A DNA stretch of 64,000 nt from positions 62,001-126,000 of the forward strand of contig JAANOX010000062.1 of NCBI GenBank assembly GCA_020184695.1, read 5' to 3'. The stretch comes from Histomonas meleagridis 2922-C6/04-290x. Taxonomy: Eukaryota > Protista > Parabasalia. The position numbers and the translations under genes are program-made. Below, one piece after another: positions 6,202 to 64,000 of this stretch (position 1 is the first letter of the stretch; every line of letters begins with the position of its first letter). The notes beneath the pieces are model-generated. The model ran no database searches and had not been told where the DNA came from. It worked only from the letters and a program-made list of their open reading frames with translations.

Positions 6202-6513
6202 CTTATTAAATAGTATGTTGAAAAAAAGTGTCAATCTTCTTGTTACTAACAAATGAAACCTTCATAATAAACAATGTTAATAAATAAATGATTTTAATGC
6301 TTTTTTGTCCATACTGGTCTGTTACTTTATTTCTAGATGAGAGAAATAAAAACATTTGGCCAACGAATTATTTGTATGAAGTTAAAATAGTATCAACTTT
6401 ATTAAGGGGGTGAGGGGAAAGATTATAAAATTATAAAAAAAAATAATGAAATAACACTTTAAATATACAAACTTTCTTTTTTTTGAACCTAAAGTCACAG
6501 GAACGTTAAAAAG

Positions 6514-7887: not shown

Positions 7888-8124
7888 TCTCATAAATTGA
7901 ATTATTGCAAGAATTTTGTAATTATAGATTAAACTTTTATAGTTTTAATAAAGCGTTGTTTTTTGTCAATCTAAAGATTTTTGGTAATTAAAGATTTTTG
8001 TTGTTTTTAATTTTTTTTCGTACGATAAATTTTCAATATATAAACGGTTTTTTTTCAATTGAAATACGTTTTTTTAATTTAAAAAGAGAAAAGCAAAATT
8101 TATTTATTATAAAACATGTTTCAC

Positions 8125-8691
8125 TCATAATATGTTTTTTTCTATTCCCTTACTCGTTTCTGGACTTGCTTGTGCTTCACTTTTAATGCTTGTCTTGTTT
8201 CGATACTGAATGTTTTCTTGTTCATCATTTTGCCAAATAATAGGAAGTGGTTCTGATGATATGTCATTGGCTGTAGTTAAGTCATTGTCATCATCCATCA
8301 AATATTTATATGAATCTGAGTCTGAATAAGAAGAATTTGAATCTGACTTTTTGAAATCTTTTGTTGGTTCAGTCATGTCTGTCCTCATATCCAAAACACG
8401 CGCCATTTCGCGTGCAATTGATTGTCGTTCTGGTGGGAGGATAGGACCAAACTTATCAACTTGACTGACAATTTTACATTCAATAACATCATCTTTATGA
8501 ACACCTTGACTTTGCAATGTCATTGAAGGTGTTAATACTTCTCCATTGTGAAACAAATATACCTTTTCGTTGTTAAAACATGAAAATTGTAAAAGATTTG
8601 ATAAGTCAGCAGCCGTAGCAGAATACCTTGTTACTACTGGTAAAATTGCGCCGGGTAGCCATTGAATTCTGACCTTTAATTCGTCGCTCAT
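8125..8691 (-). CDS. Ubiquitin-like domain protein with acidic/Ser-rich tail
   Basis: The N-terminal ~75 aa fit a Ubl fold (VYLFHNGEVLTPSMTLQSQGVHKDDVIEC). Confidence 0.6.
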   Translation of the reverse strand: MSDELKVRIQWLPGAILPVVTRYSATAADLSNLLQFSCFNNEKVYLFHNGEVLTPSMTLQSQGVHKDDVIECKIVSQVDKFGPILPPERQSIAREMARVLDMRTDMTEPTKDFKKSDSNSSYSDSDSYKYLMDDDNDLTTANDISSEPLPIIWQNDEQENIQYRNKTSIKSEAQASPETSKGIEKNIL

Positions 8692-14541: not shown

Positions 14542-15531
14542 ATGGGGGATGAAAACGACCTCCAACATATGGATCCTCGTGAGTTCCAGGGCAAAACATA
14601 TATGATCGAAGATGAAGAGCAATTTGTTCCTGAATTCAGCAAATGGAATCATGTTTGTTCTTGTTGTTGTGGAAAATGCAATATGGTATATTTCCCCGCA
14701 ATAAAACGATATTTCTGCAACCAATGGGAGTGCAATCCATTATATCCTTGTATAGTTACAATATTTATATCGGTTTCATTTGCCTTTGCTTTATGGGGAA
14801 TAATCGATTTTTATACAGGTGGGGCAATGATAGCCATGATTACTGTTACCTCATTTGTATATGTTGTTTGGATATTTGCTTATTATGAAGCTGTATGTTC
14901 ATCACCAGGATATTTACCATTTTATTGGGCGGTTGATAAACGTCAAGAATACACATTAGAACAACAATGGGATGGAGTAGTTACAAATCAGAAGCAATTT
15001 GATTTTGCAGCTTACAATGGTCGACCAGAAAGAGGAAGTTTTAGCGTCCAAGCTCGTCGTCTTGTTCTGAAAGCCGACCACATCTGCAAATGGATTTCCA
15101 ACTGGGTTGGACTTAAGAACTATCGATATTTTTTCACAATGGTCATATGGATGTTATTATATTTCATCATGTTTTTTGCGGATTTCATAGCAGTTATGGT
15201 CAAAATGCATAACTGGCAAACGCGCGCCAGTGTTATTGGCCTTATTATATGCGCTGCTCCAGCATTAGGTTTTAGTGGATTTGCAATAGTTATCTTTCGT
15301 CGACATGTTCGTTACCTATGTCGTAACACAACAACACTCCAACAGTTTAAGGTGAAGAAACTGAAAGATAAGCATAATTATTATGATCTTGGATGTTGTC
15401 GAAACATTGTCGAAGTAATGGGACCTGCGAAATATTGCCCGATTTGGTTCTGTCCAATACCATATCATAGAGAATGGAATGGATTTACATGGGAAAAGAA
15501 TGCAGAACCTAAAGATGATGATGAAGCATAA
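14542..15531 (+). CDS. DHHC-family palmitoyl acyltransferase, DHIC variant
   Basis: Four TM segments and SPGYLP...RPER...DHICKWISNWVGLKNYRYF, plus a TTxE-like motif (NTTTLQQF). Likely ATG at 14542. Confidence 0.85.
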   Translation: MGDENDLQHMDPREFQGKTYMIEDEEQFVPEFSKWNHVCSCCCGKCNMVYFPAIKRYFCNQWECNPLYPCIVTIFISVSFAFALWGIIDFYTGGAMIAMITVTSFVYVVWIFAYYEAVCSSPGYLPFYWAVDKRQEYTLEQQWDGVVTNQKQFDFAAYNGRPERGSFSVQARRLVLKADHICKWISNWVGLKNYRYFFTMVIWMLLYFIMFFADFIAVMVKMHNWQTRASVIGLIICAAPALGFSGFAIVIFRRHVRYLCRNTTTLQQFKVKKLKDKHNYYDLGCCRNIVEVMGPAKYCPIWFCPIPYHREWNGFTWEKNAEPKDDDEA

Positions 15532-16529
15532 ATGATATATTAATTTCATAAACTTTATAGTCGAATAATAGTTACAGAATTGGTTATATATTAATAAAAA
15601 TTTTTAATGTTATATTACGAAACATAAAATTAGAATTAGAATTTTCATGCTTGGTGAATATGACTTTTTCATATAATTTCGATCGTAGTTCACACAATTT
15701 TGTTAACCATCGTTTCTATCGTGCTTTTAAAGGTTTAAAGCCAAAAAATATTCACAAAGAAAAACCATAAGAAAAAAATCTATATATATATAAAACATTT
15801 TGATGATCACATCTGTAAGATCCCCTTGGAAAACGAATATTATCTAAGATTGCAAACAATTGAAATTAAACAATAAATATATTAATTGAGTAAAAAGAAA
15901 ATAGGCCAAAATAGTAGAGATGAAGCCGTGAAAATTTCTTTATAAGTAATATATACGAAATGAAAGTTAATAAATTTCAAATCAATTTGTATTATAAGAA
16001 CATATCAGCTAAGTGTTTTACAAGCACTATGCTCTGTTGATCATGGTAAATGAAACATGGTATTATTCGATAACATATTATATATATTTATTCATAAGAT
16101 ACATATTGAAATGCTATATCGACTAAAAGTGAATAACTGTTGGTGATTACTTATAATAAAACATATTGATATAAGTCCTGGAGAACAGAGTCACAACAAG
16201 AAAGAAAACGATATCTTGTTCAGGAACAATTGAAAGCAAGCCGAATAAATCATTATCAAAAAAAAAAGGTTAATCACAAAATTGTGAGACATGATCGATT
16301 TCTACTGAAATTTTACGTATGTACACAAACAGTTGTTTTTTTCTGAAAATTTCGAAGTTTTCCACAGAAAAGTTTCTTTCAAATCGGTTTTATGCAACAT
16401 TGCGTAAACATGAATTCACAAGTAAACGGCCACTTAGCGTAAAATGGATGATGAAAAATCATTAATATCGGATAAACACTGGAAAAGAAACCATACTTTA
16501 ATAGAAAAAAATACCTTAAGGTAATTAGT

Positions 16530-16817
16530 TTATTCACCATTTAATTCTCTTGCGTCTTGACAGATAACGCATGGTGCGCAGAAGCAAGTAATGAGACAAT
16601 CTGCGCAGTTATCGTTTGTATCCTTTCCCTTCTTGCTTAAAACACCCTTTCTGATCCAGTAAGGAGCAATTGGTTCAATGCAATGACAAATTGTGCAATC
16701 TTCACTTCTAATTTTTGAATGGTTTTCACCATTAAGGCATGCTGCGCAGAAGCAACCATAAAGGCAAATCTTAATGTCCTTGAAGCATCCGAATGTACCA
16801 CCGCTGTAGTCTTGCAT
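16530..16817 (-). CDS. PLAC8 (Cys-rich, DUF614) family protein
   Basis: GTFGCFKDIKICLYGCFCAAC and DCLITCFCAPCVICQDAREL. The ATG at 16817 is preceded by Inr-like TCATT. Confidence 0.85.
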   Translation of the reverse strand: MQDYSGGTFGCFKDIKICLYGCFCAACLNGENHSKIRSEDCTICHCIEPIAPYWIRKGVLSKKGKDTNDNCADCLITCFCAPCVICQDARELNGE

Positions 16818-36973: not shown

Positions 36974-37453
36974 TTAGAACATTGATGTTTTGTGCATTGC
37001 AGCCACAAATTCATCGTAAGAAATTAAGCCATCATTGTTTTTATCAGCTTCCATTAAAATGTCTTTAAGTTCTTCGTCGGTTAATTGTTCTCCTAATTCG
37101 TTACTTATTCTTTTTAGATCTTCAAAACAAATCCCATTAGCATTATCTCCACAAAAAAGATGAAATGCATGTTGAATTTCTTCCTCGGGATCGTTTTCAT
37201 TCTTTTTTGTAAGCATTTTCAGAAAAGTCTGAAAATTTATTGCTTCTAAATCTTCTTCACCTAAATCTTGTATCATATGCAAAATTTCTTTTTTGGTTGG
37301 TTCAAAGCCAAGAGATCTTAACGCAATTCTAATATCTTCAATAGAAATTACTCCATCTTTATCAAAATCCAATTGTTTAAATGTTTCTTCAATTTCAACT
37401 CTTTGCTCATCTGTTATTTCGTCTTTTTCTTTGTTTCTACCTGTTTTGGTCAA
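36974..37453 (-). CDS. CETN: Centrin/caltractin (EF-hand protein)
   Basis: EIEETFKQLDFDKDGVIS, ALRSLGFEP and LGEQLTDEELKDILMEADKNNDGLISYDEF. The only plausible start is TTG. Confidence 0.85.
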   Translation of the reverse strand: MTKTGRNKEKDEITDEQRVEIEETFKQLDFDKDGVISIEDIRIALRSLGFEPTKKEILHMIQDLGEEDLEAINFQTFLKMLTKKNENDPEEEIQHAFHLFCGDNANGICFEDLKRISNELGEQLTDEELKDILMEADKNNDGLISYDEFVAAMHKTSMF

Positions 37454-37534
37454 AATTATTTTCTTTTTTAGAACGTTAATTATGATGTATATTATTCATT
37501 ATTCATTAACTATATCATTTTTTCATTAATGTCT

Positions 37535-37607
37535 GCTTTGGTAGCTCAATCGGCAGAGCGCAGGTCTCATAATCCTGAGGTCGTGGGTTCGAGCCCCATC
37601 CAAAGCA
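37535..37607 (+). tRNA. tRNA-Met(CAT), elongator type
   Basis: 73-nt cloverleaf: acceptor GCTTTGG/CCAAAGC, D-stem GCTC/GAGC, anticodon arm CAGGT-CTCATAA-TCCTG (T31:T39 as in eukaryotic elongator Met), T-arm GTGGG-TTCGAGC-CCCAT, discriminator A. Confidence 0.96.
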
Positions 37608-37637
37608 AAATGGATCATTTTTTGTTTTTTTCCCCTG
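37591..37637 (+). repeat. Left copy of the 47-bp target duplication (tRNA 3' end + trailer)
   Basis: Matches 42457-42503: the first 20 nt are identical and there are 5 mismatches in the next 27 nt. Confidence 0.93.
37618..37631 (+). terminator. RNA polymerase III oligo-dT terminator
   Basis: T6-G-T7 starting 10 nt after the tRNA 3' end. Confidence 0.8.
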
Positions 37638-37657
37638 AAAATGCAGCTACGTGCTAG

Positions 37658-40600
37658 CAGGAAGGAAACAGAAGTCCTCAGCCAGGAGGATACGAATTTT
37701 TACATCCACGAGATCGATTATCATCTAATGATTCAGAAGATCTTTTGACTTTACCTACCCCAGTTGACTCTACTCCTTCTCCCGCACATTCTACACCCTT
37801 AGGAGCTTCGATATCTCCAAAACTTAGCCCCGAAGCTTTGGAAGAAGACATCATCTACGCCGCTGATAAAACCGCTTTTGACCATCTCAAAAACCTTCCA
37901 AATGTGAGACTATTCAAAGGACTTTTTCTTAGAAAACCGGAAATTTCTGACCCTGATCTTATAAATTCTGAAGATTCCGATGATTCCTCTGAATTTTCTT
38001 TTGAGGAGACGGATAGCAGCGAGATTCAGCCACAAAACGATCAATTTTCAGAATCTACAGATAAATTTCTTAGAAATCCAGAAGACGACGACGATGAAAA
38101 CCCGATTCAATTTAATGTTAACATTCAGACAGTCGATAAAGTCAATGAACAAGAAGATATTTCAAATAAAGTTATTAACAAGCTCAAAACAATCACAGAT
38201 ACCAAACAACTTAAAGAATACATTGATACGCTCAACCAATCTAATTCAGCTTATGATTCTGAGGAACTGGTTCCCACAACCTTATATTTATTGTTGTAAA
38301 TATCATAACTGCAATTATGGAACCAACCATCACCAACAAATTGATTCACATTTATTCAATACTCATCAAGAACAATATCAAAAACACAATTGTCTATCAT
38401 CAGAAATCATTGGATATTTATTAGAAAAAGATACTGAGTGGTATGAATATGATCATACAAATAATACTTATAACAAATTAGGACAAATAAATATTTGTTT
38501 AATAAATAACTGTAATTATGTTACAACCAAAACAGGATCTGCATATGATCACTATAAAAAGCAACATAAAACCTACCTCAAATGGCGGAAAGATGCAGGC
38601 CCTTTTTGGGGGTTAATTATGAGTTATGTTAAAGAAAATACTACATTACCTACAATTTATGAATTATTAAGACCTAGAGATTGTTTTAAATGTACAATAT
38701 GTGGAACAATAGTTAGTTCAGTCCAAGCTATGAGACTTCATAATTCCCAAACTCATATCAATTCAAGACAAACAATAAGAGGTTCTAGACCAAATAATAT
38801 CCAAGAAATTCAAATAATCAATGGTTCACTACTAAAAGAAATTGAAATCGCAAATAGCCAAAATTATAAAGATTCAGAAGATAGCTCTATTGAAAAACAA
38901 CAAAGTGAATCTTCTTCAGATAATGAGCATATAACTATAAATCAAGAAGAGACTAAAGACATAACAGAAACTAGTCAACAAGAATCAGAAACTCAAGAAG
39001 TCGAAGAATTGCATCCATTAAACATCGAAACTCAAAACAGGGAAGAATCTAATTCATCAGTAATTGAAGAAGAAAAACAACTAAATCATAATGCCAAAAA
39101 CACAGTTAAAATGTTAAACAATAACCAACTTCAATTTTATAATGACAAATGTAACAAATGGAGAAATAAATATCGAAATCAAAACGTTAGTTTCAAAAGA
39201 TTAAACAAAGCACAGCGAAAATCTATTCAGCCGAAAATCAATGAATTATTTAAAAATATTATTATCAAAGAAGCTAAATTCTTATTAGACAAAGATAACA
39301 TTACATGGAACATTATGGATGGATTTTTAATTAAAACAACACATAGAATTCAAAAGCTATTAACAAATACATTCCCCAATCTCAATCAAATAAATATTAA
39401 ATTCGATGAGAAACAAATCATAAGAAAAGAAAAACTATACTTATATCAAAATAAAATTATTGAAATCGATAAAATTATTGATTACATTTATAAAATTATA
39501 GATATTATTAATGCACATCAAGAAGATTTAAACAATAACCAAAACGCATTAAATGCTATTGCTAATATTAAAGAAGGTTTAATCAAATCATTAAGTAAAT
39601 TTAGTGAAGATGATTTAAAAAACATATTTAATATTCGATCAGTTGAAGATATAGATAATTTAATTAATGAAGACGAAGAACATCGTGAAGAAAGATTTAA
39701 ATGGATTAGAACAATACTTAGAAATTATATTGATAAATTAAACCCAAATGATATAAAAGGAAGTGAAAAACTACGTAAATTTTATGATGAAGATCCTAAA
39801 AGATGTATCCGATGGAAACTTTTAGCCAATACAACACCTTCATGTAATATACCAATCGAACAACTTGAAAAACATTTTAATAATGAATGGGCTAATAAAA
39901 GAACATATTATAGAAGATGATACATGGTATCTACCTAAACTTTTATCTAATGAAGACAACAAATTTATTATTGATTATATTACAGATGAAAAGAATATCA
40001 TTAATACAATTAAAATTAAAGACAATTTATCTGCATGTGGTCCAGATGGAATTCCTAATTCTGTTTGGAAAAGTAATCCAAAAATACAGCAATTTTTATT
40101 ATCTCTAATTATTAAAAACATTATTAAATTTCAAAAAATACCAGAACAATGGAAACAATCCAAAACTATTTTAATATCTTTAACAATAATATAATCGAAA
40201 TTATTCATTCTATGTATCAAAATATTTCCACAAACATTGTTATCAATGGAATCAAATCAAATGATATTAGAATAAGAAGAGGAGTTAGACAAGGATGCCC
40301 TCTATCACCCCTTTTATTTAATCTTTGTCTCGAACCTCTAATTAGAAAGATTAATGAAGAACGAAAAGGAACAGATATCTATATTCAAGAATTAAATGAT
40401 AATATTAACATGGGAATCCAAGTATATGCAGATGATGTAATGTTAATTTCAGATGAACGAGAAAAAATGGAAGAATTAATTAATACTACAACAAAATATT
40501 GTAATTATGCTAAAATTCAATTAGCACCACAAAAATGCCAATCATTTTCATACATTTTAGATGGTAATCGTAGAATTCCTTTACAAGAACCTTTGATTAT

Positions 40601-42410
40601 AAATAATGTCCCAATCCAAAATAATGATGTTTTAGCTAATATTCAATATCTAGGTTCAGCAATTTCAGTTACTAAAAGACAACGTATGAAATTCGCAGAT
40701 CGAACTATTAATGAAGTTATAAGGAAAATCGAATTAATTGGTGAATCAAAACTAAGATTAAATCAAAAATTAGATGCTCTTAAACGATTTATAATTCCAC
40801 AATTAGATTTTATTATGATAAATGGACAAATTAGTCTTACAAAACTTAAACACTTAGATCAAATAATTCGAAACTTAATTAATAATCATATCAAAAGCAA
40901 TAGTACACCTAAACATTTCTTTTATTGTAATTGGAAAGATGGAGGACTTGGAATTCCTTCTCTTAAAGAAAGATATCTCTATTTACAAATTAAAACTTAT
41001 TTATCTTTATTTTACTCGAAAAATGAAACAGTTAAACACTTCATACAACAAATGGCAGAAGATGAAATTAATTTTAGAAGAATAATTATCTCAGAAGTTC
41101 CTCAAAGATTTAACAATATCACTGAATATGAAAACCAAATAGCACAAGAATCAGAGAATAAAACTAATAATTTATTCATTCGAGCAATCGATGCATCACG
41201 TAAATTAAATATAGGTATCAACTTTAATAATAACTCTCTTTCCATGAAGAATCTTGATAATGATGAAATTATTGAATGTAACTCGATCAATAATTTTTAA
41301 CAGATCGTTAATTACGTTACTTCAAAAACGTCATCTTAATAAACTTCAAGAATTTAAACTTCATGGTCACTCTTTTTTTACTCTTGAAAACTCTAAATAC
41401 TCTAACTCTTTTTTCGGTACCTATACAAGAAAAACTTCAGATAGTATTCAACGTTTTTGTATCAATGCAAGATGTAATAACTTACCTACTAAGGAAATTT
41501 TAAGTAAAAGAATCCAAATACGTCCAAAAATTTGCCCATATTGTAGAAACCAAAACGAGATTGAATCACTGAAACATATTCTAAATCATTGTGTTCCTCA
41601 ATACTCCAAATATACTCGAAGACACAATGATGTTGGTGAAATTATTATTAAATCTATCGAAAAATCAAATAAATCTAAATTTATTTTCCATAGATCACAA
41701 GAAGTTAAAAATTAATGACTTTCATTTTACCTGATAGATCTAAAAAGACTTAAACCAGACATATGGTATTTGGATGACAAAACAGGTAATCTTAATATAA
41801 TCGAAATAACTATACCTTATGGTGAAATCTCGAACATTAACACATTCCCAGACGAAGAGATTTCCAACTCACTAAATTATAGTCGTTACATTAAAAAAAT
41901 AAGAAAATATGAAACTTTGATTCAAGATATTAATGACACTAAAAAAATTAAAGTTAAATACTATATCATTGTTATTTCATCTATCGGAGCAATACCATTT
42001 CGAAACTTATTCGGATATCTTAAAAATTATGTAATAATAATGAAATCATTACTTCAGAAACATGTAAAAGATGCAGTGAATGTACATTAATTCATTCTAT
42101 GAAAATTTTCTGGAATGCTATCAACCCACAACCAAGGAATCGTAACGTGAATGAAGGTAGAGGCGTCCAGACCGATGAAAGTGAAGGCGAAGAATCATTA
42201 ACATCAACAGAAATTGAAGACAGTATCGAAGAAGAAAGCTTTCAAGGAGAAATCCCGAATAACCAAACAGACGTGGAAGAAGAAGAGAAATCAGAAGAGG
42301 TACATCAAGAAATAAGCCAACCGAAAAGTCCCAGAAAACGAAGAAGGAAAAGAAGTCGAAGAAAACATAGTAATCTCGTTCCTGCGGAAGGAAGAGTTGC
42401 TAACGAATAG
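37658..42410 (+). pseudogene. Retrotransposon polyprotein (3x C2H2, reverse transcriptase, CCHC, restriction-like endonuclease), broken
   Basis: Fingers CKYHNC..H..H, CLINNC..H..H and CTIC..H..H. RT motifs ACGPDGI, WKQSKTILI, GVRQGCPLSPLLFNL, YADD, YLG and GGLGIP. CPYC..ESLKHILNHC, RRHNDV and RLKPDIW..IIEITIPY follow. There are at least six frame breaks. Confidence 0.9.
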
Positions 42411-42440
42411 AAGAAAACATAATAACCTCGAAGGATCATA

Positions 42441-42456
42441 TAAATAAATAAATAAA
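42441..42456 (+). repeat. (TAAA)4 retrotransposon 3' tail
   Basis: TAAATAAATAAATAAA directly abuts GAGCCCCATCC. Confidence 0.9.
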
Positions 42457-42503
42457 GAGCCCCATCCAAAGCAAAAACGATTACTTTTTGTTTTTTTCTC
42501 CTG
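42457..42503 (+). repeat. Right copy of the 47-bp target duplication (orphan tRNA-Met 3' fragment + trailer)
   Basis: GAGCCCCATCCAAAGCA equals tRNA positions 57-73, followed by a T5-G-T7 trailer. Confidence 0.93.
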
Positions 42504-49581: not shown

Positions 49582-52500
49582 TTATTTATTTGGCATAATT
49601 CTTCCCACAGTCAAAACCGGTATTGATATGTTATACTCGACGACTCTGAACTCCCATAGCACTTCCACTGTTTTCACTGACGTCGGCAAATATGAGAACG
49701 ACATTTTATATCTTTTTCCGCTTGACATGAGCACGTTTGGCGTCAGGCATTCGATTGGACTATTTTTTGGGTTTGATTTCATTATCCAAACGATTTGATA
49801 AGGGGAAGCAGTCGGATTAATAATTTCGAATTTTTTAAAAGTTTTTATACCAATTGCACCTGAAAACATTTCGATAACTTTAATATTCTCTGGTAATTGA
49901 TAGTTATAATCGGGATGTCTTCTCTTTAAGTAATCGGACATCTGCAGATTGAAATGACACAAAGGTCTTCGTGAGAATGCAATGACATTAATCGTTGGCG
50001 GGTCCATAACTTGTAGAAATGGAATTTGCATGATAACTTTCGCTTTAAAGTCGTCGACTTCTAATGGCGAAAAACTAATTTTGAATACACAAGTTTGTTG
50101 TGGGTTAATATAACCTGTTGTCGGTAATACTGAAAATGGGATTTCATTAATTTGTTGTGAATAATTCGTTCGTAAACTAATGAAGTCTTTGATGACCCAT
50201 GAATAATCAAATCGTATCATTGACGTGTTGGTGATTTTAACCTCGACAAATCGCGTCTGGTACATCATAGTTGGCGCAAATGATATTTCGGTGGTGTCAA
50301 TTGAATATCGAATTAAATCGGAAATGGCATTAACTTTAAGAATTAATTCTCGTGGTTTAAGACCATCAATGAGATGATATGGTGGCTCTGGTTTAACATC
50401 AACGATTTTAATGGTTTCATTTCCATTGGTTTGTGATGTTGGAATTGGAGAAACGTTCAAATGCGTTGTGCTGTTTTTGACAACTTTACTTGCGCCGCGT
50501 TGAAGTCTTTTGTTCGAAGGTTTTGTAGTATGTATCATATTGTCTTCTTGTGGAGGAAGCATCTGTTGAAGCATTGAAGTCTTGGTGACAAATTTGACAA
50601 TCTTCATCGAATCATCCCAATCAGGAGAATTCGGATATTCATACTCAATTGGCGCCCATTGACATGGAATCTTAAGGCCATTGTATTTGACTGGTTTATC
50701 CGTGATGAAATTCACTTTGATCTCTTTTGATTCTTGTGGATGAATATGTCCAACTTGTGGAGAAAATGTAAACTCGTGTTGGCTTTGCCATGAAAAACGA
50801 ATCGTATTTTGACTGACGTTCTTCATTATGAATGTTTGTTGTTGTTGACGTCCAATTACATTATCTTTAAAATCTAATGAACCTTCATCTTCTGATAAGC
50901 CTTCAAGAATAAAGTCCTCACTAAATCCTTCGCCAATAAACGAAAAACTTAAGTTTGCTTTAGGATTTTCTGCAACTGATATCATTAAATCATATTGTCC
51001 TTTCCTAGGTTTTGTTGGTGAAAATATAACAGAAAGGTTTAAAATACGACCTGGATCAATTGTAATTTCTTTTTCAGGTGAAGAAATTTCTTCTAGTTGG
51101 AAATCAGGAGCACTTTTTTCAGTAATTTCAACAACAGTTGGAATCAAACCGTTATTTTTCAATGCTATCGTTTTCTCTTTTGTGAACCCAATTAACGTTC
51201 TCCCCATATTAAAAATCACCGGTGAAGTCTTCAATTGCTTTGAGTCTAATGAAATACAAGTTAATTGAGGTAATGTACCAGTGCCTTCTATTAGGAACTT
51301 TAAGTTTTTAGTAGAAGGATTAGTACCACCTCTAACTATAGCTTCAAAAGAAACAATAAACTTATCACAAAATATTGGAGTGAAAGTTAATTTCACACTT
51401 TTTGATGAATTTGCAGGAATTTCTATTGTTTTCGAACTAAGTTCTAATTGTTGAAGACCTTTTAAATATTTAGGTTTAGCATTCATGTTAATGTCGACAA
51501 TACAATTTATAGGGAAAGGATTAATCAAATAAATATCAATAGATTTTTGATGTTGTAAAGTCAAAGGTTGAAAGTGAAGAGTAAATTCGTCTTCAAGGAA
51601 TGCAGTATGATCAGACTTTTGTAAATCATAACGTAAACATAAATGTGTACCTTTAAAAATATTTTCGAAGTCATTATTTTTAATTCCAGGGATGAAAGAT
51701 TCCGCAGTTAATTGAAATGGAATACCATTTTGTTGAATTAATTTTGGGTTACAATCAGTGAAAGAAAAATAGATACAAGAATTATATTTCCCAGGAGTAA
51801 AGGAACTAAATTCGAAGTCAATAGTTACTGTTTGATTCCGTTCAACAGTACCTGAACAAGGTGCCAAAATAAAGTTCCCAACTGCGACGGTTTTGTCGGT
51901 GAATTTCCTTGTTTTAAGTTTTGTCATTTGTTTATTTTGTTGAGATTTTTTACCTTTAATACTATTATTTGTCACACTTAATTCATCATCTTCTTTCGGT
52001 ACTGTAATTTCATAGTTAAATGGGAATATTCCATTATTTTTTAATGTGATTTGTTTATTTTTTGTTGAGTTTACAGCTAAAGGACCAAAGTCTAATTGTT
52101 CAGCAGGGTTTAAAATGAACGAACTATAAAATGTTTCGACTGAAAAAGGAATTGAAAGTTCGCCAATTTTAGTTTTAGTTAATTCATCGAATATATATAA
52201 TGTTATAGCTTTTTGTAATTTGTATTTCATTAATTTATTTGGACAAATATTAAACAAAATTTGTGTTGATTTACCACCATTAATAATTCCTTCGATTGGA
52301 TTAATTTTAAAGAATGATCTTTTACTTTTAGGTTTTATTTCGATTTTAAAGTTCGATGGATATTTTCCTTTGTTTAATAAGTTACATTGTATTGTTTTTT
52401 CTTGATTAACTTTTAATTGTCCAAATTGTAAATGATCATTTCCACGCGGGAATTGGAAATCAAATGAAACATCAAAAGATTCCGCAAAAATCGGAAAACT

Positions 52501-55500
52501 TTTTGTAGAAAAAACTTTTGATTCTGTTATATCGAAAACTTCGAGTTGAATATTTTTTTTGATAGTAATAGTTTTCATTGAACAATATTTAATTTCGACA
52601 ATAAAACTTTCATTTGGTTCAATGATACCTTCGATTGCATTAATATTAAAATAATCGGCTAAACTTTGAGTGTTCTTTAAATGCCAATACGCTGATAATT
52701 TTCCCATTATTATATAATTCGAGTTTTTAATACTCGAAATTGTTTTATTAAAAGTTTACCGAAATCGAATTCATTTATCGAAGTTTCAATAATTGGAACA
52801 CAACCTTCCGCCAAAACATTAAATATTAATGGCTCCGGATTATCTTTTATCAATATTATCATTTGATTTTTATATATTTCAGCGTTTAAAGGATTAATAC
52901 CAAATATAATTTCACCTTTTTCATTTGGATTTATTGTTAATTGTGGAGTTTCAATGAGAAATGAAGTTTTAGGTATTAAAAATGTCGATGTAATATCAAT
53001 TGGAAATGTCGAAACATTTGTTAAATATATTGAAGTTTTATATTGTAAATTTTTTGGTTTTTCTTTACATATTAATAATGAGCCGAAATAAAATTCATTT
53101 GTTTTTAATTACATAAGTAAATTTCGATTTAGGATCAAATTTACGTATTTTATTTGGAAATATGTTTTGTATATTTCGATCTATTTCAGGATATGAACAT
53201 TTAGCAAAAACATTTAATTTAAATATTTCCGATTTTGCATTAATTATCGAAAATAAAATTGTATCTTTATAACTTCCAATGTTTTGACCAAAGAATTTAA
53301 TTTTGTAATTGTTTCGATGAATTAGAATCAATTTTTCCAACGCGGAGTTCTTCGATTTATTTCATAATCATTAATATTTAATTCTTTAATAAGACTATTT
53401 CTTCTTGTTGACTTCGATGATCTTCTACCAACTGTATGTGAATCAGGTCTTAATGATTTATTATTTTGTTGAGGGAATTCGAATATTTCATCACTAATAA
53501 TTGTGAAATATTTTGGCATTGTAATTAATGTATTAATTTTTTTAGGTTTTTCATTAACAAATATTTTCGATGTGGAAATAAAATCATCAAATGATTTCTC
53601 TTTAATTTGTGATTGTTTTGGGATATAATTTATAATAATATTTTTGATTTGTTCTAATGTTAATGTTGATACGTCAATTAAAATTGTATTTTTATTTTGT
53701 TTTATAAATTCATTTAGTTTTGTCTAATTTCTTTTTATTATTATTAATATTTTTATTCGATTTTTGATTATGACGTTGAGTTGAACGACTCGATTTCTTG
53801 TTAATATTATTATCATGTTCAAATGCTTGTTGAAGTAATTTATTTCGTACATTTTGTCGTTTCTCATCAACAATATTCTTTTCTTCTTCATTAAGGTTTT
53901 CATATTGTGATTCAGTCATATTAAAAAGATTTTCTTTTTCTTGATGTTGTTCAATTCTTTTTTGTTTTCTTATTAACGATTTTTGTTTTTCTTCACGTTC
54001 TATTAATACATCTTCATTAATATTTAACGTGATTTGAAATATATAATGTCCATCAAGAGAATTTATTATATAATTTAAAATGATTTCTAAAGATGTTAAG
54101 TTTTGATGTTGTATTATATAAAATGGATTTTTTTGTAATTCGATTTCAATATTTTTTTGTTTTTGACAATGAGTAATAAATTGTTGTGTAGTATTTTGTT
54201 CTTGTAATATATTCGATAATCCATCAATTATAAAACCATTAACATAATCTTTTTGATTAATTAAATCTGAAAATATTTTTATATATTCATCTGAATTAAT
54301 TTCATTTTTATCAATTAAATCTTTAAATATTTCTTTTAAGTTAATAATTGGAATATTTAAATATTCCGAAATAATTTTTGCAATTGTACTTTTACCACTT
54401 ATAGGTGGACCATTAATTATAATACAAATAGAAACATTCGAAATTAAATTATTATTTGTAATTAATTTTTCATTTTCATTTTCATTTTTGTTATTAATTA
54501 ATTTTTTGGATTCAATATAATCGATTAAACGTTGCATATCATATTGTAATGCCATAACTTCAATTGGATAATTTGTTGGATTAATAATTTTGAAATTAGT
54601 TGTATATGATTCAGAATAAGCATTTATTGGAGGAATAATAATTTCATTTGGTTCGAAAGTTATACGTAATTGTATACCTGTACCTTGTAATGTTAAATAT
54701 ATTGGTTGATTATTATATTTTATATTTATAGGAAATTGCATTGAATATAATTTTTCTGTTTTTGGTGTAAAAATTATTTCAATTACTTCAGTAGAAAATG
54801 GTAATAATATTCCTGTAGAAGGATTTGCAATAAAAATTTGTTGTGATTTTGTTGTGTTAATATTTCGTTGTATTAAATTAGTATATTGTGCATCAGAAAA
54901 TGAGAATTCACAATTTATTGGATTTAAATTTTTGATTTGTAATGTAATTAATTTCGATTGTCCAATAATTACATTACCAAAATCGAAATGTAAATTCGAA
55001 AAATGTAAAATTGGCATTTCTAAAACAGATTTTAAGTTAATAATTGTATATAAATCATTATTAAATATAATTGGAATTTCTAATTCGACTTCACCTATAA
55101 TTTCTTTATTATGTTTTAATGTATCAAACATTATTGTGATTTGTAATTCAGTATCAAATGGTACATTTTCAAATGATGTTGGCTCGATAATAAAACCAGT
55201 ACCAATTAAATTATTTGTATTAATTTCAAATGAAATTGGAAAATTTGATTTTGATTTCATAATAAAAGTTTTCGATTCATTTTGTCCAAAAATAATTTTT
55301 CCCATATTAATTTCATATCTATTTGTTATAATATATGGTAATTCATTAATAGTTTTACCTAAAATTCGTTTTTTAAATCCGAGACTTTTATCATTAATAA
55401 ATTTTGTTACTAATTTGTTTTCAATTGAATTTAATATTTCTTCATTAATATTATTATTATTTTCATTATTTTCATTATATATTTTTAATAATGGATCATT

Positions 55501-58500
55501 TGTTGATCGTGGAAGATTAATATATAATTGTGGTATAAAACAATTTACATTAATATCTATTCGTACGTCATCATAATGACCAATTTGTATAATGAATGAA
55601 CCATTAAATTTATTAGGTAAACCACATAAAACATTAACATTTAATATAAATGTTTCTTGTATTTGTATTATACCTTCCATAGGTTCTATAGTTAATTTTT
55701 GGAATTTGTTATTTTTCGGTATTTTAATTTTAAATGAAATTGATATATCACTTAAATTTTGTATTGTAACTTTTTGGTTTAAATTATCAATGAAATTCCT
55801 TGAGCCAAATTCGATATGTAATGGATCTATTTTATATTTAATAGAAGCAGATCCTCCATTTAAATGTATAACATATTCAGGTCCGCCTTTAACATGACAT
55901 ATTGCTGTAGCATTAAATTCCGCACTTTTACCATTTAAATCACTTAATGCAAAGAAACTAAAATGTATAACTTCATTTTGATTAGGTTCTAATGTCGTTC
56001 TAATTGGATAAATATTAAATATTTTGGTTATGTCATAATTTTTATGTGATGGTAATAATTCCCAATAAAAATCAGCTTTTAATTCACTAATGTTTTTGAT
56101 TTCAATTCCTTTTGTTTGTTCTGTGTTGATTAACATATTACCAAAGTTTATGTCACCTGAAGGATTAAATAATAAATTCGGAAATATTATAATTCCTTTT
56201 AAATTGAGAAAATATTTTTGACTATGATTCGGAAATGAAATTAATAATTTTTGATTTATTGTTTCTGAGATAAAATCTGTTTTAAATGATGGATCAAATT
56301 TGATTGTTAAAGATTTCTTTTCATTAGATTCAAATGAAAGATTCGTTTGTGATATTATAAATGGTAAATTACAATCGATTTTAATTGACATTGAAATCGG
56401 TGTTTTATTTGTAATAGAAATTGTTTTTTCGATTTGTTTTAATAATGATTTCGTTGGAGATATTGAATTTGAAGAATTTTCTTCTTCTAACTCAATGTTA
56501 TGTAAATGTTTAAATTCTATTTGTTGCTCTGAGAATATAAAATTCGGTTTAATGATTTTACCTTTAAATAATGGTTCGAATAATGTAATTCTTTTATTAT
56601 GATTTGTTGTATAACATTGAGATTTAATTGAGAAATTTGTTGGTAAATTACATTTAATGGAAAATGTAAATTCGACTGAACTTTGTGGCATTATAACTTG
56701 TTGTTCAGGGATAACATTAAATATTAAATTCGTATTAACGCCATCATCAATTTTAGGTTTGGATTGTATCCATCTTAAAATTTGTTTTTTATTTCCTTTG
56801 TTATTAAATGTGACTTTTTTGGTTACTAATGTTTCATTTAAAATATAACCAAAATCAATTTCTGTTAAATCAATCGATGATATTATTGGTGATCCAATTC
56901 CAATTGCAATAATTGGTATCGTTATTAATCGTAAATATTGAAATTGTAATAATAAATTTCCTTTAAATTTTGATGAATCATTTAGAAATGCTTCGATTTG
57001 AAATGTTATTGTTTCATTTTCTTTAATTGTTCCATTATTAATAGGTAATGAAAAACAATTATGTTTCGTTTGTTGGATTTCCGCTGTAAAATTTGCTGAT
57101 ATTTTAGAATTATTTGTAATAGTAATTTCAATTATTTGTTTCGTTAATACTTTAACTGTTCCAAAATTAATTTCATTTTGTGAAATTATGATTTCTGGTC
57201 CAATACAGATCCCTTTAATGAAAAATGGAAGAAATTCTTTTTCATTTCCAATGATTTTAATGTGTTGTGATATCAGAAATGTTCCAAGTTTTAAATTAAT
57301 AATTCGAATTTTAATGTTTGATATAGAATTTGCTTTTATAATACCATTCGGTGTTTCATTGATAATTTGACTTTGTGTTGTGATTTCATTTGGTGAAATA
57401 ATTTCATATTTAGCTGGAAATTCTGTATCATTAACAAGTTGAAATGTTGTTTCATACGGATAATTTATAAAAATATTCCCTAAATCAATAGTGGAATTTC
57501 TAATTGTAATATTCGGACAAATACAATTCGCCATAATTGGAATTTCAGTCAAATTTTTCCCATATTTAAAAATATCAAAACTTAACATTAAATTATATCT
57601 TTGAATCATATTTGGAATAAATTCAATTGTAACAATTTGTTTGGAATATTTGTTAATAAATCCTTTACTATTGTTAATTTTAAATTCGCGTTGTGAAAAC
57701 GTTTCGTTTTGTTTCAAATGAAATAAATAATCAAATGATATTTCAGATTTGTTCTCAACTTCAACTTCAAATGTATATAAAAAGCCATAACTAAATGTTC
57801 CAAAAATAATTTCTTTCGGTTGAATATTAAATGTTGGTCCAATAACTTTCCCAAAAAATGTAATTTTCGGTTCATTATCGATAACTCCTTTGATAAATAT
57901 TCGAAATATTTCATTAAATTGAACTACTGCATTAGCAATAAATTTGATTCGAATATCATTTGAATTACCTGGCGCAATGATACCACGCGATGGCGTGAAT
58001 TCAAAAATTAATCCATTGTTCAATGTTTGTGTTTCAATGTTAAAATCAACATCAATTTTCCCAACATTTTCAAGTTTAACTGTATATTCTAAAATACTAT
58101 CAAGGAAAACATGTCCAATATTAATAGATTGAAGATTAAGAATCGCTTCTGGTGGTAAACCATAACCAATTAACGGTAAAATAATCCTTCCTCCCGTTTC
58201 TTTAACATATAAATAAGAAATATCTTTATGTGGTCCTGCAATATTCGGTCGAAAATTAATGGTGATTTCAAGGATTCGTTTTGGCCAAACTTCAAAATTC
58301 GTTGTTTCGAAAAAAAATATTTCTGAATTGAATAAAAGAAGATGTGAATATGAATCTCTTTGATTTGCACTCAAAACATCTGTTTCTTCAATAATTTTAT
58401 TTTCTTCATTTTCGTTTGGAAATTTTCGCCATTCAAAATGAAGGATTTGTTTTGTGTCATTAATAATTTTCACTGTATATGATGTTGTGGTTGATACATA

Positions 58501-58548
58501 TGTTTTTGGAAAATATATTGATGTTGGTTCGATTCTGATTTCATTCAT
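49582..58548 (-). pseudogene. HYDIN: Hydin-like protein (ASH domains + adenylate-kinase-like insert), interrupted in one ~1 kb segment
   Basis: Tandem ASH/PapD-like units (IDFGYIL, IHFGSR, FDFGNV), P-loop GPPISGKST, and an intact C-terminal ORF 49582-52707. The segment 52700-53720 continues Hydin sequence across several frames. Likely ATG at 58548. Confidence 0.8.
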
Positions 58549-58566
58549 GAAATAACGTTTTTTAAT

Positions 58567-58576
58567 GAGGTGCCCC
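58567..58576. promoter_or_regulatory. GAGGTGCCCC candidate core-promoter element
   Basis: 9/10 match, 18 nt upstream of the Hydin ATG (58548, minus strand). Confidence 0.45.
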
Positions 58577-58726
58577 AATAAATAACAAATAAAAAATTTA
58601 ATATTAATATTTCAGTTCAAGACATTTCTCTTTAAGAAAAAGAGATACACAAATAACACAAAAATATCAAAGCACATTAAAAATTTGTATTTAAAAAATT
58701 ATTGCCATTTCATTTTTATTCATGAA

Positions 58727-60639
58727 TCAGATGGCAAATTTGTTATCTTCTTGAAAATCAGTTGCAAATGGATCTTCTTCAATATCCGCAATGTTCATTA
58801 CTGCGGAATATGTACTATCTTTTCCATTTTGCTCATCAGAACTTTTCGTAGTTTCATATGAAAAATTTTTATTTTTGTTCTTTATTTTAATGATAACAAT
58901 TATAAGTATCAAAATAATTATAATTATTACAACTGCAATACAAATAGATGTGATAATTGTTATATTATTTTTTTATTCGAATTTGATTCTGACGAATATA
59001 AAATGGTATAAAAATTGGAATAATAACGAATGTAAATTGAATATGTAATAACTTCATAATCATAATAAATAATTAATGTTGGAATGTAAATAATATCTGT
59101 ACCTTTGAATGAATATAAAAATGAATTCGTAATTGATGAAAATATTGTAACAGTTTGCGATAATAATATAGAAAATGTTAATGAAAATGTTTTTGTAATA
59201 TTTATATGATTAAAAAATGTATTTGATTGTGAAAATGAATTTGAACGAGTAAATGTATTCGAACTAGAAAATGTATTTGAGTTAGAGAATGAATTTGATT
59301 GTGAATATGTATTCGAATTCGAGAATGTATTTGATAATGTAAATGAATTTGAATCAGTAAATGTATTTGAGAATGTAAATGAATTTGATTGTGTGAAAAT
59401 ATTTGACATTGTAAATGTATTAGAGAATGAATTTGATTGTGAAAATGAATTTGATTCACTAAATGTATTTGATAATGTAAATGTTTGTGTAGGCCATGGA
59501 GGACATCCTATTTCTGTTGGATCATTTAAAATACTGAAATATTCACCAAATGTATCATCGTTATATTCATTTGTTGTGATAACATATGTAAAAGGATCAA
59601 ATGATTTCGCATAAACAATAGGACTTGAATCCCCATAATAATAAACACATGAAAGATGACAGCAATAAAATGCATAATTACAAATTTCATTGACATTTCC
59701 TTTAAATTCAATAAAATTTAAATTAGTACATACATAAAATGCAGAATCACCAATTTTGTGTACATTTCCTCCAAATACAATCGAAATTAAATTTGTACAA
59801 TAATAAAATGCAGAATCACCAATTTTGTGTACATTTCCTCCAAATACAATCGAAATTAAATTAGTACAATAATAAAATGCAGAATCACCAATTTCATTGA
59901 CATTTCCTTCAAATACAATCGAACTTAAATTAGTACAATAATAAAATGCAGAATCACCAATTTCATTGACATTTCCTTCAAATACAATCGAACTTAAATT
60001 AGTGCAATAAAAAAATGCATGATCACCAATTTCATTCACATTTTCTTTAAATAAAATATTATTTAAATTAGTGCAATGATAAAATGCATAATCACCAATT
60101 TCATATACATTTCCTTGAAATAAAATAAAATGTAAATTATTGCATAGTTGAAATGCGTCTTCAGCGATTGAACAATTTAAAGTATCAATCGTTAAATAAT
60201 ATAATGTTTCACAAAAAGAAAAAGCAGAATTTGGAATATAGTTAACAGTACCATGAATCAAAACTGAATATAAATCAAGAGTTTTATCAATATTGTTCAT
60301 TTGTTCTTCAGAGTTTACTATAAATGTAAATGGAGGTACCATAAACTCTTGGAATGTATGAACAAAAAATATTGCAAATATAAACAAATTGTTTTGGTTT
60401 TCTTTATAAAAAATCATTTTAACAAAAAAGATTGTTAATAAAATCATTAATATCAGGAAATTATTAAGATTAATAATATTATCTTTAAGATCATCAAGAA
60501 AAGTGTAATCATATGATTTTTGAAAAACAATATTCTGTTTGATGTAAAATGTTTCATCAGAAGAGTCAATAAATGATTGTGAACATGAAGAAACAATGAA
60601 ATAAGTTGAGAATAGATAAAATATAAGATGAAAATACAT
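58727..60639 (-). CDS. BspA-like surface protein, frameshifted just before the TM helix
   Basis: TpLRR units and an SNTF stalk. The main ORF stops at 58960; the TM and EEDPFATDF tail lie in another frame (58727-58960). Confidence 0.82.
59720..60035 (-). repeat. Near-perfect 69-bp (23-aa) LRR tandem units
   Basis: CTNLSSIVFEGNVNEIGDSAFYY x2 and CTNLISIVFGGNVHKIGDSAFY x2, nearly identical at DNA level. Confidence 0.9.
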
Positions 60640-60806
60640 GAATGAAACCAAAGTGAAGTTGATTTACTTCACTCGACGATAAAATTTTCAAATAAAATTA
60701 TATGAATTCGAACAATCTTTCATTTGAATTTTGATGAATTATTCAGAAATGTTTCGACTGTGAAGTTGTTACTTCCTTTGGGAAGTAAATCATTTGAATT
60801 AGTTTC

Positions 60807-61620
60807 GTTCAAAAATTAATTTCATGTTGTAAAATTATGATTTATGGTACAATACATATCCATTTAATAAATAATGGAAGAAATTATTTTTCATTTCCAA
60901 TGATTTTAATGTGTTGCGATATTAGAAATGTTCCAAGTTTTAAATTAATAATTCGAATTTTAATGTTTGATATAGAATTTGCTTTTATAATACCATTCGG
61001 TGTTTCATTGATAATTTGATTTTGTGTTGTGATTTCATTTGGTGAAATAATTTCATATTTAGCTGGAAATTCTGTATCATTAACATGTTGATTCGAATCC
61101 TAAAATTAAACCATTGTTCAATGTTCGTGTTTCAATGTTAAAGTCAACATCAATTTTCCCAACATTTTCAAGTTTAACTGTATATTCTAAAATACTATCA
61201 AGAAAAACATGTCCAATATTAATAGATTGAAGATTAAGAATCGCTTCTGGTGGTAAACCATAACCAATTAATGGTAAAATAATCCTTCCTCCCGTTTCTT
61301 TAATGTATAAATAAGAAATATCTTTATGTGGTCCTGCAATATTCGGTCGAAAATTAATGGTGGTTTCAAGGATTCGTTTTGGCCAAACTTCAAAATTCGT
61401 TGTTTCAAAAAAAAATATTTCTGAATTGAATAAAAGAAGATGTGAATATGAATCTCTTTGATTTGCACTTAAAACATCTGTTTCTTCAATAATTTTATTT
61501 TTCTTTGTTTAGTTGTAATTTTTACATTGATGATAAGCATATTAAGATGATGATTATGATTGGATTCTATTTCATAAAATAACGTTTTTTAAACGGGCTG
61601 CCCCAATTAAATATCAAATA
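60807..61620 (-). pseudogene. Duplicated, internally deleted Hydin 5' fragment
   Basis: 60807-61090 aligns to 57158-57440, 61100-61500 aligns to 58004-58408, and 61550-61620 aligns to the Hydin start region. Confidence 0.9.
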
Positions 61621-61743
61621 GAAAAATTTTTACAAAGAACAGAAACTCAGAAATATATTTACTGTTTTTATAGTGAACATATTTCATGTCCCTCATTTTG
61701 TTAATGCATAAAAAATTCCGCTTATCAATTTTTACTAAATTAT

Positions 61744-64000
61744 TTAGAGAACCAATTTGTTATCTTCTTTAAAGTCTATCGCAAATGGATCTTCTTCAAT
61801 TTTTGTTAAATTCATGACTGCTGCATATGTACCTGTGTTATCTTTTCCATTTTGCTCATCAGAACTTTTCGTAGTTTCATATGAAACATTTTTATTTTTG
61901 TTCTTTATTTTAATGATAACAATTATAAGTATCAAAATAATTATAATTATTACAACTGCAATACAAATAGATGTGATAATTGTTATATTATTTTTATTCG
62001 AATTTGATTCTGACGAATATAAAATGGTATAAAAATTGGAATAATAACGAATGTAAATTGAATATGTAATAACTTCATAATCATAATAAATAATTAATGT
62101 TGGAATGTAAATAATATCTGTACCTTTGAATGAATATAAAAATGAATTCGTAATTGATGAAAATATTGTAACAGTTTGCGTAAAAGTTAATGTCAATGTA
62201 ATTGAAACACTTAAATTAGTTAAAAGTGTGTTAGATTTAGAGAATGTGTTTGATTGTGAATATATATTCGATTGTGAATATGTGTTTGAATGTGAGAATG
62301 TATTTGATTGCGAAAATGATTGCGTTGGCCATGGATCACATCCTTCAATTGTTGTTTCTTTATTAACATCTAAATTTCCAAATTTAGTTTCATTATATTC
62401 ATCCGATGTCATGACAATAGGGATTGGAATTAAATGCATTTGATCCAACTGTAGGACTTGTTGTTCCATAATAATAAATACAGTGAAGAATACTACATTC
62501 AGAAAATGCACATTCACAAATTTCATTTACATTTTCTTTAATATAAATCGTACTTAAGTTAATACATTGATAAAATGCATATGAACAAATTTTTTGTTAT
62601 AGAATTTGGAATTTCAAATATTTTATATTCTTTCCCAATAGGAAAACAAAGAATTTCCGTTTTATTTTTTTATTATAAAGAATTCCTTTTTCATCATTAT
62701 AATAATTTATATTATACTTAGAAACGTTTATAAAGTGAAGTTTCGTACATCCTGCAAATATATTATTTTCACTTATTATTGTAACTGATTTCGGTATCGT
62801 AATGCTTGTTAATGAATAGCATGATTGAAATGAAAAACTTCCTATTTCCTTAACACCTTCTTCAATAATAACTGTAGCTAAATTAGAACATTGATAAAAT
62901 GCAGAAGCACCAATTGTTTCAATTGTCCCTGGAATTGTAATATATATTAATGAAGTACATTGATAAAATGCATATTTTTCAAGTATATTTATATCTTTTG
63001 ATATTGTAATTGTTTCACTTTCTTTTCCTTGTGGATAAATAATAATTTGCGTATGATTTTTATTATAAAGAATTCCATCATTTTCATAATTAGAATAATT
63101 CGTATTATTTTCTAATACTTTTATAAATTGAAGACTTGTGCATCCAGAAAATACATTTTCACCAATTAATGTAATTGAATTCGGAATTGTAATATTTATT
63201 AATGATGTACAGCCATAAAAATGCATTGGCGCCAATTTCTTTTAATACCTTCTTCAAGAGTTATATTTATTAATGACGTACATGCACGAAATACACTTTC
63301 ACCAATAGTTATAACTGAACATGGAATTATAATACTTTTTTTAATGAAGAACAGTCATAAAATACATTGTTTTTTTAATTTCTTCAACTCCTTCTGCAAT
63401 ACTTACATTTATTAATGATGAACATGATCGAAATACATTTTTCACTAATAGATGTAACTAATTTTGGAATTATAATACTTATTAATGATGAACAGCCATA
63501 AAATGATGAAGATTCAATTATTGTAACTAAATCAGGAATATTAATAGTCTTTAATGAAGTACATGATCGGAATAAATTATAACTAATCGTTGTAACTAAA
63601 TTTGGGATCGTTATATATTGTAATGATTCACATGATTGAAATGCTGATGTACCAATCGATTTAACGGAATTTGGAACTATAATTTTCATTAATTTAGGAC
63701 ATTGATTAAATGCATAATCACCAATTAATGTAGTTTCTGCTTGAATTGTTACATTTTGTAATAAAGGATATGATGAAAAATGTTCATTTGGAATAGTGGT
63801 AGTTCCACTGTAAATTATAATGTATTTTATTTCATCTTTATATTGATCAACTTCATCCATTTCATTTTTACTGCTTATTGTATATGTACTTGTTCCTGAA
63901 TCAAAAGTTTGAAATGCGTGTATGAAAAATATTGTAAATAAAAATAAAGTTTTTTTGTTTTTTATGTCGCTTTTTCGATAAATGTTTTCTTTATTAAAAT
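61744..64000 (-). pseudogene. BspA-like surface protein, fragmented, 5' end beyond the window
   Basis: Pieces 63384->64000, 62597-63235 and 61744-62526, with TpLRR units, stalk, TM and an EEDPFAIDF tail. Confidence 0.82.

Follow-up and report, generated by a model that had tools for sequence, protein, structure and literature searches.

Retrotransposons that insert specifically into tRNA genes have been described among the elements that lack long terminal repeats (non-LTR elements) and that encode a restriction-like endonuclease (RLE). Specificity is reported for tRNA-Pro genes in NeSL-1_TV of Trichomonas vaginalis, and for tRNA-Arg genes in LIN15_SM and tRNA-Glu genes in LIN25_SM, both planarian elements (Kojima and Jurka 2015, PMC4640811); NeSL-1_TV was put in the NeSL clade by a later paper. 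Here we describe an element of this general type in a 64-kb stretch of the Histomonas meleagridis genome (assembly GCA_020184695.1, contig JAANOX010000062.1), referred to below as the window. A decayed R2-like element of about 4.8 kb lies in the T-loop of a tRNA-Met gene, with a complete copy of the gene to its left and a 17-nt remnant of it to the right. The reading we prefer, to which we give a probability of about 80%, is that the element inserted through target-primed reverse transcription (TPRT) in the orientation of the gene and that the insertion rebuilt its target.

Going by its published description, NeSL-1_TV resembles the Histomonas element in being a parabasalid RLE-bearing non-LTR element associated with a tRNA gene, and has been placed near the NeSL clade; the difference is in the target, tRNA-Pro for NeSL-1_TV and tRNA-Met in H. 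meleagridis. An RLE element specific for a tRNA gene has therefore already been reported from a parabasalid. An earlier note on this locus, made from the sequence, was aware of none and proposed a new site-specific integration system, which overstated the novelty, since tRNA-specific RLE elements had been reported (PMC4640811); YURE, which it listed as a tRNA-Arg element, has instead a weak preference for U2-derived satellites (PMC4640811). LIN15_SM and LIN25_SM, of the R5/LIN lineage in Schmidtea mediterranea, are likewise RLE-bearing and specific for tRNA genes, although their hosts are flatworms and the LIN15 3′ junctions are in the 5′ half of the tRNA rather than in the T-loop (PMC4640811 supplementary alignment). 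Full-text literature searches returned no description of T-loop-targeting, tRNA-rebuilding elements of this kind, and the target-regenerating duplication may be undescribed.

R2 proteins (9nl3, 9dou, 8gh6 and 8ibw) are the closest relatives in the structural database for both the reverse transcriptase (RT) and the CCHC plus RLE parts. R2 also shares the order of domains, N-terminal zinc fingers included, and undergoes TPRT from a fixed bottom-strand nick, as would the element described here. R2 differs in targeting 28S rDNA and inactivating the unit it enters, in having nicks that are nearly opposite and so give no long duplication, and in being co-transcribed with rRNA and freed by a ribozyme; a search with Rfam found no ribozyme in the Histomonas element. 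Utopia, a NeSL-related group specific for U2 snRNA genes, also uses a small multicopy RNA gene with a precise 3′ boundary, and its reptile families make 20-bp duplications, so that staggered top-strand cuts do occur in the group (PMC4640811); the target is nevertheless U2, and the duplications at the tRNA elements reach 47–48 bp and include the terminator. Dictyostelium TRE5 and TRE3 and yeast Ty3 share the use of tRNA genes as safe landing places, but are guided beside them by RNA polymerase III (Pol III) factors with no fixed internal base (PMC3706591). The TRE elements also have an apurinic/apyrimidinic-type endonuclease, whereas the Histomonas element has an RLE and sits inside the gene. 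Dada elements insert sequence-specifically within tRNA and snRNA genes, sometimes in tandem, but these are DNA transposons that make 6–7 bp duplications and split the target gene.

The element and its target gene

The tRNA-Met(CAT) gene, at 37534–37608 by ARAGORN, is the sole tRNA gene in the window, and it is intact, as the earlier note had said (Table 1). A 17-mer corresponding to tRNA positions 57–73 has two exact occurrences in the window, at 37591 and 42457, and an occurrence with two or fewer mismatches is expected only 0.01 times by chance. The second copy (42457–42473) directly adjoins the (TAAA)4 tract at 42441–42456, so that the 3′ junction is at TTC^GAGC within the T-loop and B box, again as noted earlier. 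The extent of the repeat is where that account fell short: the 17 tRNA bases are present, but they are part of a 47-bp direct repeat that also takes in the 30-nt trailer. The two copies are identical at 42 of 47 positions (blastn self-comparison and ungapped comparison), with all five differences in the trailer and none in the tRNA bases. In the ungapped comparison the similarity between the flanks ends exactly where the element begins and ends. Because the repeat spans the 3′ end of the tRNA and the trailer with its Pol III T-run, nothing of the tRNA gene is missing upstream of the element, where the two internal promoter boxes and the terminator are all present.

The 47-bp flank is the only self-match, and blastn identifies no second copy of the element in the 64 kb and no LTRs or other internal repeats in the body (37638–42456). 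Apart from the tRNA there is no Rfam match between 37000 and 43000, and specifically no hepatitis delta virus-like ribozyme, other ribozyme or structured RNA in the element. The flanks consist of the tRNA gene and centrin-like and NAD kinase genes, with no rRNA match (Rfam, Pfam) and without the conserved 28S rDNA site. No empty allele was identified; just one other contig carrying the adjacent NAD kinase gene was read, and it shows 100% identity over 21 kb (20,960 bases).

Between 38229 and 42024 the body and full-length relatives are colinear (tblastn), and the body is an R2-like RLE-bearing non-LTR retrotransposon. It has an RT, a C-terminal CCHC knuckle and PD-(D/E)xK endonuclease, N-terminal zinc fingers, no LTRs and a (TAAA)4 tail, and the domain content described in the earlier note is thus borne out by pattern matches, Pfam RVT_1 and a profile comparison with R2. 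In the RT, the QGCPLSP motif is at 40290 and YADD at 40425. Two alignments cover the C-terminal region, one of 11 sequences (alignment A2) and one of 25 rows that include 23 relatives (alignment A3). In A2 the CCHC residues (four) and the R and H of RHN do not vary, and in A3 they are at least 90% conserved. Over both alignments, the CCHC, RH(N/D), PD, E, K..KY and SSxGA columns either are invariant (A2) or reach at least 90% conservation (A3), and the pieces encoded in the window have all of them. A profile of A3 matches solved R2 proteins (9nl3/9dou) over the CCHC and RLE part with E 4e-19, aligned through KPD, (D/E)vtv and K..KY. The three C2H2 motifs are presumed to be the DNA-binding part of the element; they give no zinc-finger match in a Pfam scan of 38295–38756, but the region aligns (tblastn) with residues 643–1150 of a relative, P0015. 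The N-terminal part is about 440 residues shorter in Histomonas than in P0015.

A HMMER search of 1.84 billion representative proteins gave 94 matches at E≤1e-30 (best 1e-69), the top ones being mostly metagenome proteins of 1700–2600 residues together with a Tritrichomonas foetus fragment (OHT15269.1). With P0015 as the query, a clade is recovered at E≤1e-98, followed by a clear gap and then by sponge and arthropod R2-like proteins at E≥1e-60. The best solved homologues of the P0015 RT are R2 proteins (E 1e-38), with LINE-1 ORF2p ranking behind. Clustering at 90% identity divides the clade into at least 37 protein clusters, of which some have ~200 member sequences, and the clade has 99% support (SH-like approximate likelihood ratio test, SH-aLRT) in an internal RT tree with unnamed outgroups. 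The closest RT relatives of the window element are 35–42% identical to it.

The pieces of the window element have no Pfam match to a protease domain, including the NeSL-type cysteine protease; this feature (Ulp1 in NeSL-1 and Utopia-1_TSP) is not universal in the NeSL clade (PMC4640811). We note that upstream of its RT one relative, P0009 (2529 residues; locus L002, 26–7615), has C2H2 fingers as well as a ubiquitin C-terminal hydrolase domain (PF00443, E 2e-22), and that this protease differs from the Ulp1 domain described for NeSL-1.

Decay of the Histomonas copy

The condition of the element was overlooked in the earlier note: this copy is dead. Frame switches map at about 38290, 39910, 40180, 41290 and 42050 in a three-frame map, and an in-frame TAA (41713–41715) splits the CCHC part from the endonuclease part, the only in-frame stop across ~1550 codons. 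Only three bases separate the 47-bp repeat from the ATG of the element. The long N-terminal frame (37658–38296) has no ATG, so either the reading frame shifts directly behind the start codon or the 5′ end is truncated; because of this missing ATG, a sixth frame change is placed, provisionally, right after the start codon. About 115 RT residues, containing motifs 1–3, are absent between 40176 and 40209, and the gap is identical in comparisons with all four full-length relatives (tblastn). The assembly is from nanopore reads, and single-base frame changes could partly be errors, but the RT deletion cannot.

The copy is also apparently solitary. Among called proteins, searches that used its RT and N-terminal pieces as queries found no H. 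meleagridis paralogues, only gene models of this same locus. The genome paper reports 23–32 retroelement fragments, making up ~0.01% of the genome, using RepeatMasker with a Trichomonas library (PMC8529796).

tRNA junctions in related elements

The 5′ flank can be read in four families, namely the window element, L085/L086, L089 and L092. All four have an intact tRNA gene immediately upstream in the same orientation, and all four have a matching tRNA 3′ fragment at the 3′ junction, in the T-loop; the upstream tRNAs of the three families other than the window's are all full-length Rfam matches. The 3′ junctions are between tRNA positions 56 and 57 in the window (Met), 57 and 58 in L092, and 59 and 60 in both L085/L086 (Ile) and L089 (Arg). 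The flanking repeats are 19 bp in L089, 36 bp in L086, 47 bp in the window and ~48 bp in L092. As a control, we found no tRNAs in 80 distant RT loci from metagenomes (23–38% identity), which were identified by generic RT-alignment patterns. The association with tRNA genes recognised in the earlier note is thus not a matter of chance.

The arrangements differ in detail. In L085 and L086 the ATG of a 2003-residue open reading frame (ORF) comes 50 nt after a tRNA-Ile(GAT), and the element ends in ...AATAAACAA, joined to tRNA positions 60–73 and the trailer. The first 36 nt after the junction in L086 match the 5′ copy exactly and then diverge abruptly; L085 has one mismatch, at acceptor position 68. 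Further downstream there is a second element in tandem, diverged and fragmented, so that in L085 the intact element is beside the tRNA and the decayed one further away. In L089 only 9 nt separate a tRNA-Arg(ACG) from the ATG of a 2038-residue ORF, and the 3′ junction with tRNA positions 60–73 and TTTTT forms the 19-nt repeat. In L092 ARAGORN calls the tRNA Arg-TCT, and we read it as Tyr-GTA with a short intron; downstream of it come two 6.6-kb units with 99.9% mutual identity. These end in ...CACTTAA (or ...CACTTTA), joined to tRNA positions 58–73 and the trailer. The units differ by just four substitutions, grouped in one block ~48 nt downstream from the nick, and by one gap, which falls in the T-run; at this distance from the nick the block sits where the 5′ junction is expected.

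Six further loci without a 5′ flank (L002, L084, L087, L088, L090 and L091) end in tRNA-3′-like fragments of 13–18 nt followed by a T-run. In our own, provisional reading these would correspond to the T-loop remainder, T-stem, acceptor strand and discriminator. In T. foetus (L003) the contig stops within the RT, before any junction. Because tRNA junctions occur in members from all parts of the clade's RT tree, its deepest branch included, T-loop targeting is most simply regarded as ancestral to the clade. At least five different tRNAs are used across the clade as a whole, and the four proven targets share only GGTTCRA and the T-stem.

Two side observations concern these junctions. Distant clade members from different samples, P0048 and P0190 (L084 700–713; L091 6966 and 8147), are joined to an identical 14-nt fragment, CCACACGGGAGGAG, which we would read as the 3′ end of an Asp/Glu-type tRNA. 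Within L091 there is also a 1.18-kb non-coding stretch (6966–8146 and 15367–16547), unlike the adjoining 7-kb element, that has the same 14-nt tRNA fragment on both sides and ends in ...AATAAACGTTCAAT; this stretch could be a non-autonomous element that uses the same site as a passenger.

A model for insertion and target rebuilding

We propose that the element protein recognises T-arm/B-box DNA and would nick the bottom strand opposite tRNA positions 56/57, with cDNA primed from the (UAAA)n end of the element RNA. The top strand would be cut 47 bp further downstream, past the Pol III terminator, and fill-in would duplicate the tRNA 3′ end and trailer to give a complete tRNA gene (A box, B box and T-run) upstream and an orphan 17-nt fragment downstream. 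In each family the bottom-strand nick would set the 3′ junction and the downstream top-strand cut the duplication (47 bp in the window, ~48 bp in L092, 36 bp in L085 and 19 bp in L089). With the target rebuilt, the tRNA gene could be hit again, which accounts for the head-to-tail stacks in the relatives, and the order in L085, with the intact and presumably younger element next to the tRNA, is as predicted by repeated re-targeting. Transcription probably starts in the duplicated flank, because the ORF begins within a few bases of the 5′ junction and a 5′ untranslated region is nearly absent, and is probably by RNA polymerase II. Pol III read-through is an unlikely source of full-length RNA, since the sense strand of the body contains 33 T-runs at least four bases long and the T6/T7 terminator lies upstream. 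An arrangement in which the element carries the whole tRNA gene as its head is ruled out, as the tandem units of L085 and L092 are separated by only 14–16 nt of tRNA.

Several other explanations were considered. That the tRNA gene was hit by chance by a retrotransposon without target specificity, or that two tandem tRNA-Met genes were joined by an insertion and a deletion, might be entertained given the one copy known in the Histomonas genome, but this is highly improbable when every family with a readable 5′ flank has an upstream tRNA in the same orientation with a T-loop junction, the distant RT loci have none, and the flank similarity stops exactly at the element ends. A different question is whether the element recognises the B-box/T-arm common to all tRNA genes, with Met merely the gene struck here. 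The small common sequence of the proven targets and the variety of tRNAs used across the clade are both consistent with such a generic target; we nonetheless consider it rather doubtful, as the distantly related P0048 and P0190 are joined to the same tRNA fragment and each of the tRNA-specific RLE families in the literature keeps to a single tRNA species (PMC4640811), although neither point concerns the Histomonas family itself.

A closer competitor retains the tRNA target but dispenses with the staggered cut. The element RNA would start inside a donor tRNA gene and carry tRNA positions 57–73 and the donor trailer, and the cDNA end would join the cut target by homology. A join of this kind has been proposed for R2 5′ junctions. 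Such an RNA-borne leader would fit the confinement of all five mismatches to the trailer, a coding region that looks younger than the ~10% divergence would suggest, and ORFs that begin 3–50 nt past the trailer, such that transcripts must start in the flank. The mismatches in the window are nonetheless too few to decide, as the chance of none falling in the 17 nt is ~0.15 if they are random. We regard the leader as unlikely and favour a true staggered cut on the strength of the junctions, because identity in L086 stops abruptly 36 nt past the nick, because the sole block of substitutions in L092 is ~48 nt from the nick and not at it, and because the repeat lengths (19, 36, 47 and ~48 nt) are family-specific, as expected of an enzyme-specific stagger.

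There are also points that weigh against insertion by TPRT with target rebuilding as we propose it. The specificity for tRNA-Met that the earlier note inferred for the Histomonas family is putative, a single dead copy being known. The distribution of mismatches in its repeat, five in the trailer and none in the tRNA bases, together with one in-frame stop in ~1550 codons, fits a simple aged duplication less well than it fits a leader brought in by RNA, although the numbers are small. The positions of the putative nicks are read off the junctions only. The contigs of the relatives are mostly from metagenome assemblies, the tandem arrays are in short-read metagenome assemblies, and the 8.4-kb period of L091, which is 100% identical, may be an assembly loop.

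Features of the locus and neighbouring genes

Table 1. Coordinates of the tRNA-Met gene, the flanking repeat and the parts of the element in the window.
Feature	Position	Strand	Evidence
Intact elongator-type tRNA-Met(CAT) gene, rebuilt or retained 5′ of the insertion	37535–37607	+	ARAGORN; Rfam RF00005, 68.2 bits, model positions 1–71, full length
5′ copy of the 47-bp repeat: tRNA positions 57–73 and 30-nt trailer with T6-G-T7 (Pol III terminator)	37591–37637	+	blastn self-comparison
Non-LTR retrotransposon body, 4819 bp, 28.5% GC	37638–42456	+	blastn self-comparison; tblastn of relatives
ATG region, then acidic Ser/Pro-rich N-terminal region	37641–38296	+	Three-frame map; sequence
Three C2H2 zinc-finger motifs, C-x2/4-C-x12-H-x4-H	38295–38366, 38496–38567, 38691–38756	+	Pattern match on translation
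Reverse transcriptase, broken; N-terminal part up to 40176, remainder in another frame from 40209	39913–41297	+	Pfam RVT_1, E 2.6e-19, profile positions 95–202 only
CCHC zinc knuckle (CPYC...H....C; 41533–41592), then RHN motif (41617)	41533–41634	+	Pattern match on translation; alignments A2 and A3
Restriction-like endonuclease, motifs KPD / IIEITIPYG / K..KY / SSIGA at 41752–41991	41719–42087	+	Alignment A3; profile against PDB R2 proteins
C-terminal tail, acidic then basic, in yet another frame; no family match	42099–42410	+	Three-frame map; Pfam
(TAAA)4, 3′ end of the element	42441–42456	+	Sequence
3′ copy of the 47-bp repeat, made up of an orphan tRNA-Met fragment, positions 57–73 (42457–42473), and the native trailer (42474–42503)	42457–42503	+	17-mer search; blastn self-comparison

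The deposited gene model GPJ56_002667 (231 residues, 37529–38299, + strand) begins at an ATG at 37529 and reads through the tRNA-Met gene into the N-terminal region of the element; this model is an annotation artefact. The sister assembly has a model of 107 residues, GO595_009495, over part of this region. To the left of the tRNA gene there is a centrin/calmodulin-like EF-hand ORF (36974–37453, − strand) that stops 80 nt from it; the ORF has no ATG at its start, the first in-frame start being TTG, and there may be a short 5′ exon or a mis-called start. By eye, the coding ends of the element (37640–38050 and 42100–42410) look more G+C-rich than its AT-rich core. From 52000 to 64000 the GC content of the window falls to 0.21–0.25 with a negative AT skew, and there are long minus-strand ORFs, one example being 53710–58578 (1622 aa). 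Among the relatives, L087 has a DDE_1 transposase gene (6278–7492, − strand) ~500 nt downstream of the tRNA-like 3′ junction of the retrotransposon.

Implications

R2-type site-specific RLE retrotransposons are under development for RNA-templated gene insertion, and new short, universally conserved targets are therefore of practical interest. Should the zinc fingers determine which tRNA species is targeted, these elements would be a natural family of RNA-templated integrases, harmless by design and each with a different small conserved target. The design principle, a long staggered cut that would restore the target gene together with its terminator, is one not reported for R2; with the target restored, an insertion would be nearly cost-free to the host and one site could be used repeatedly. 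For Histomonas the consequences are modest, namely a single dead element, in a genome where retroelements are reported to be nearly absent (PMC8529796), and the exposure of a faulty gene model. The part worth following up is the comparative result, a large and mostly unnamed clade that appears to rebuild its tRNA target. Our broadest reading, which we offer tentatively and at somewhat less than even odds, is that the Histomonas relic is the first member from a named genome of a large T-loop-cutting clade, in which a stagger of 19–49 bp would rebuild a tRNA gene that can be targeted again, such that elements pile up head to tail.

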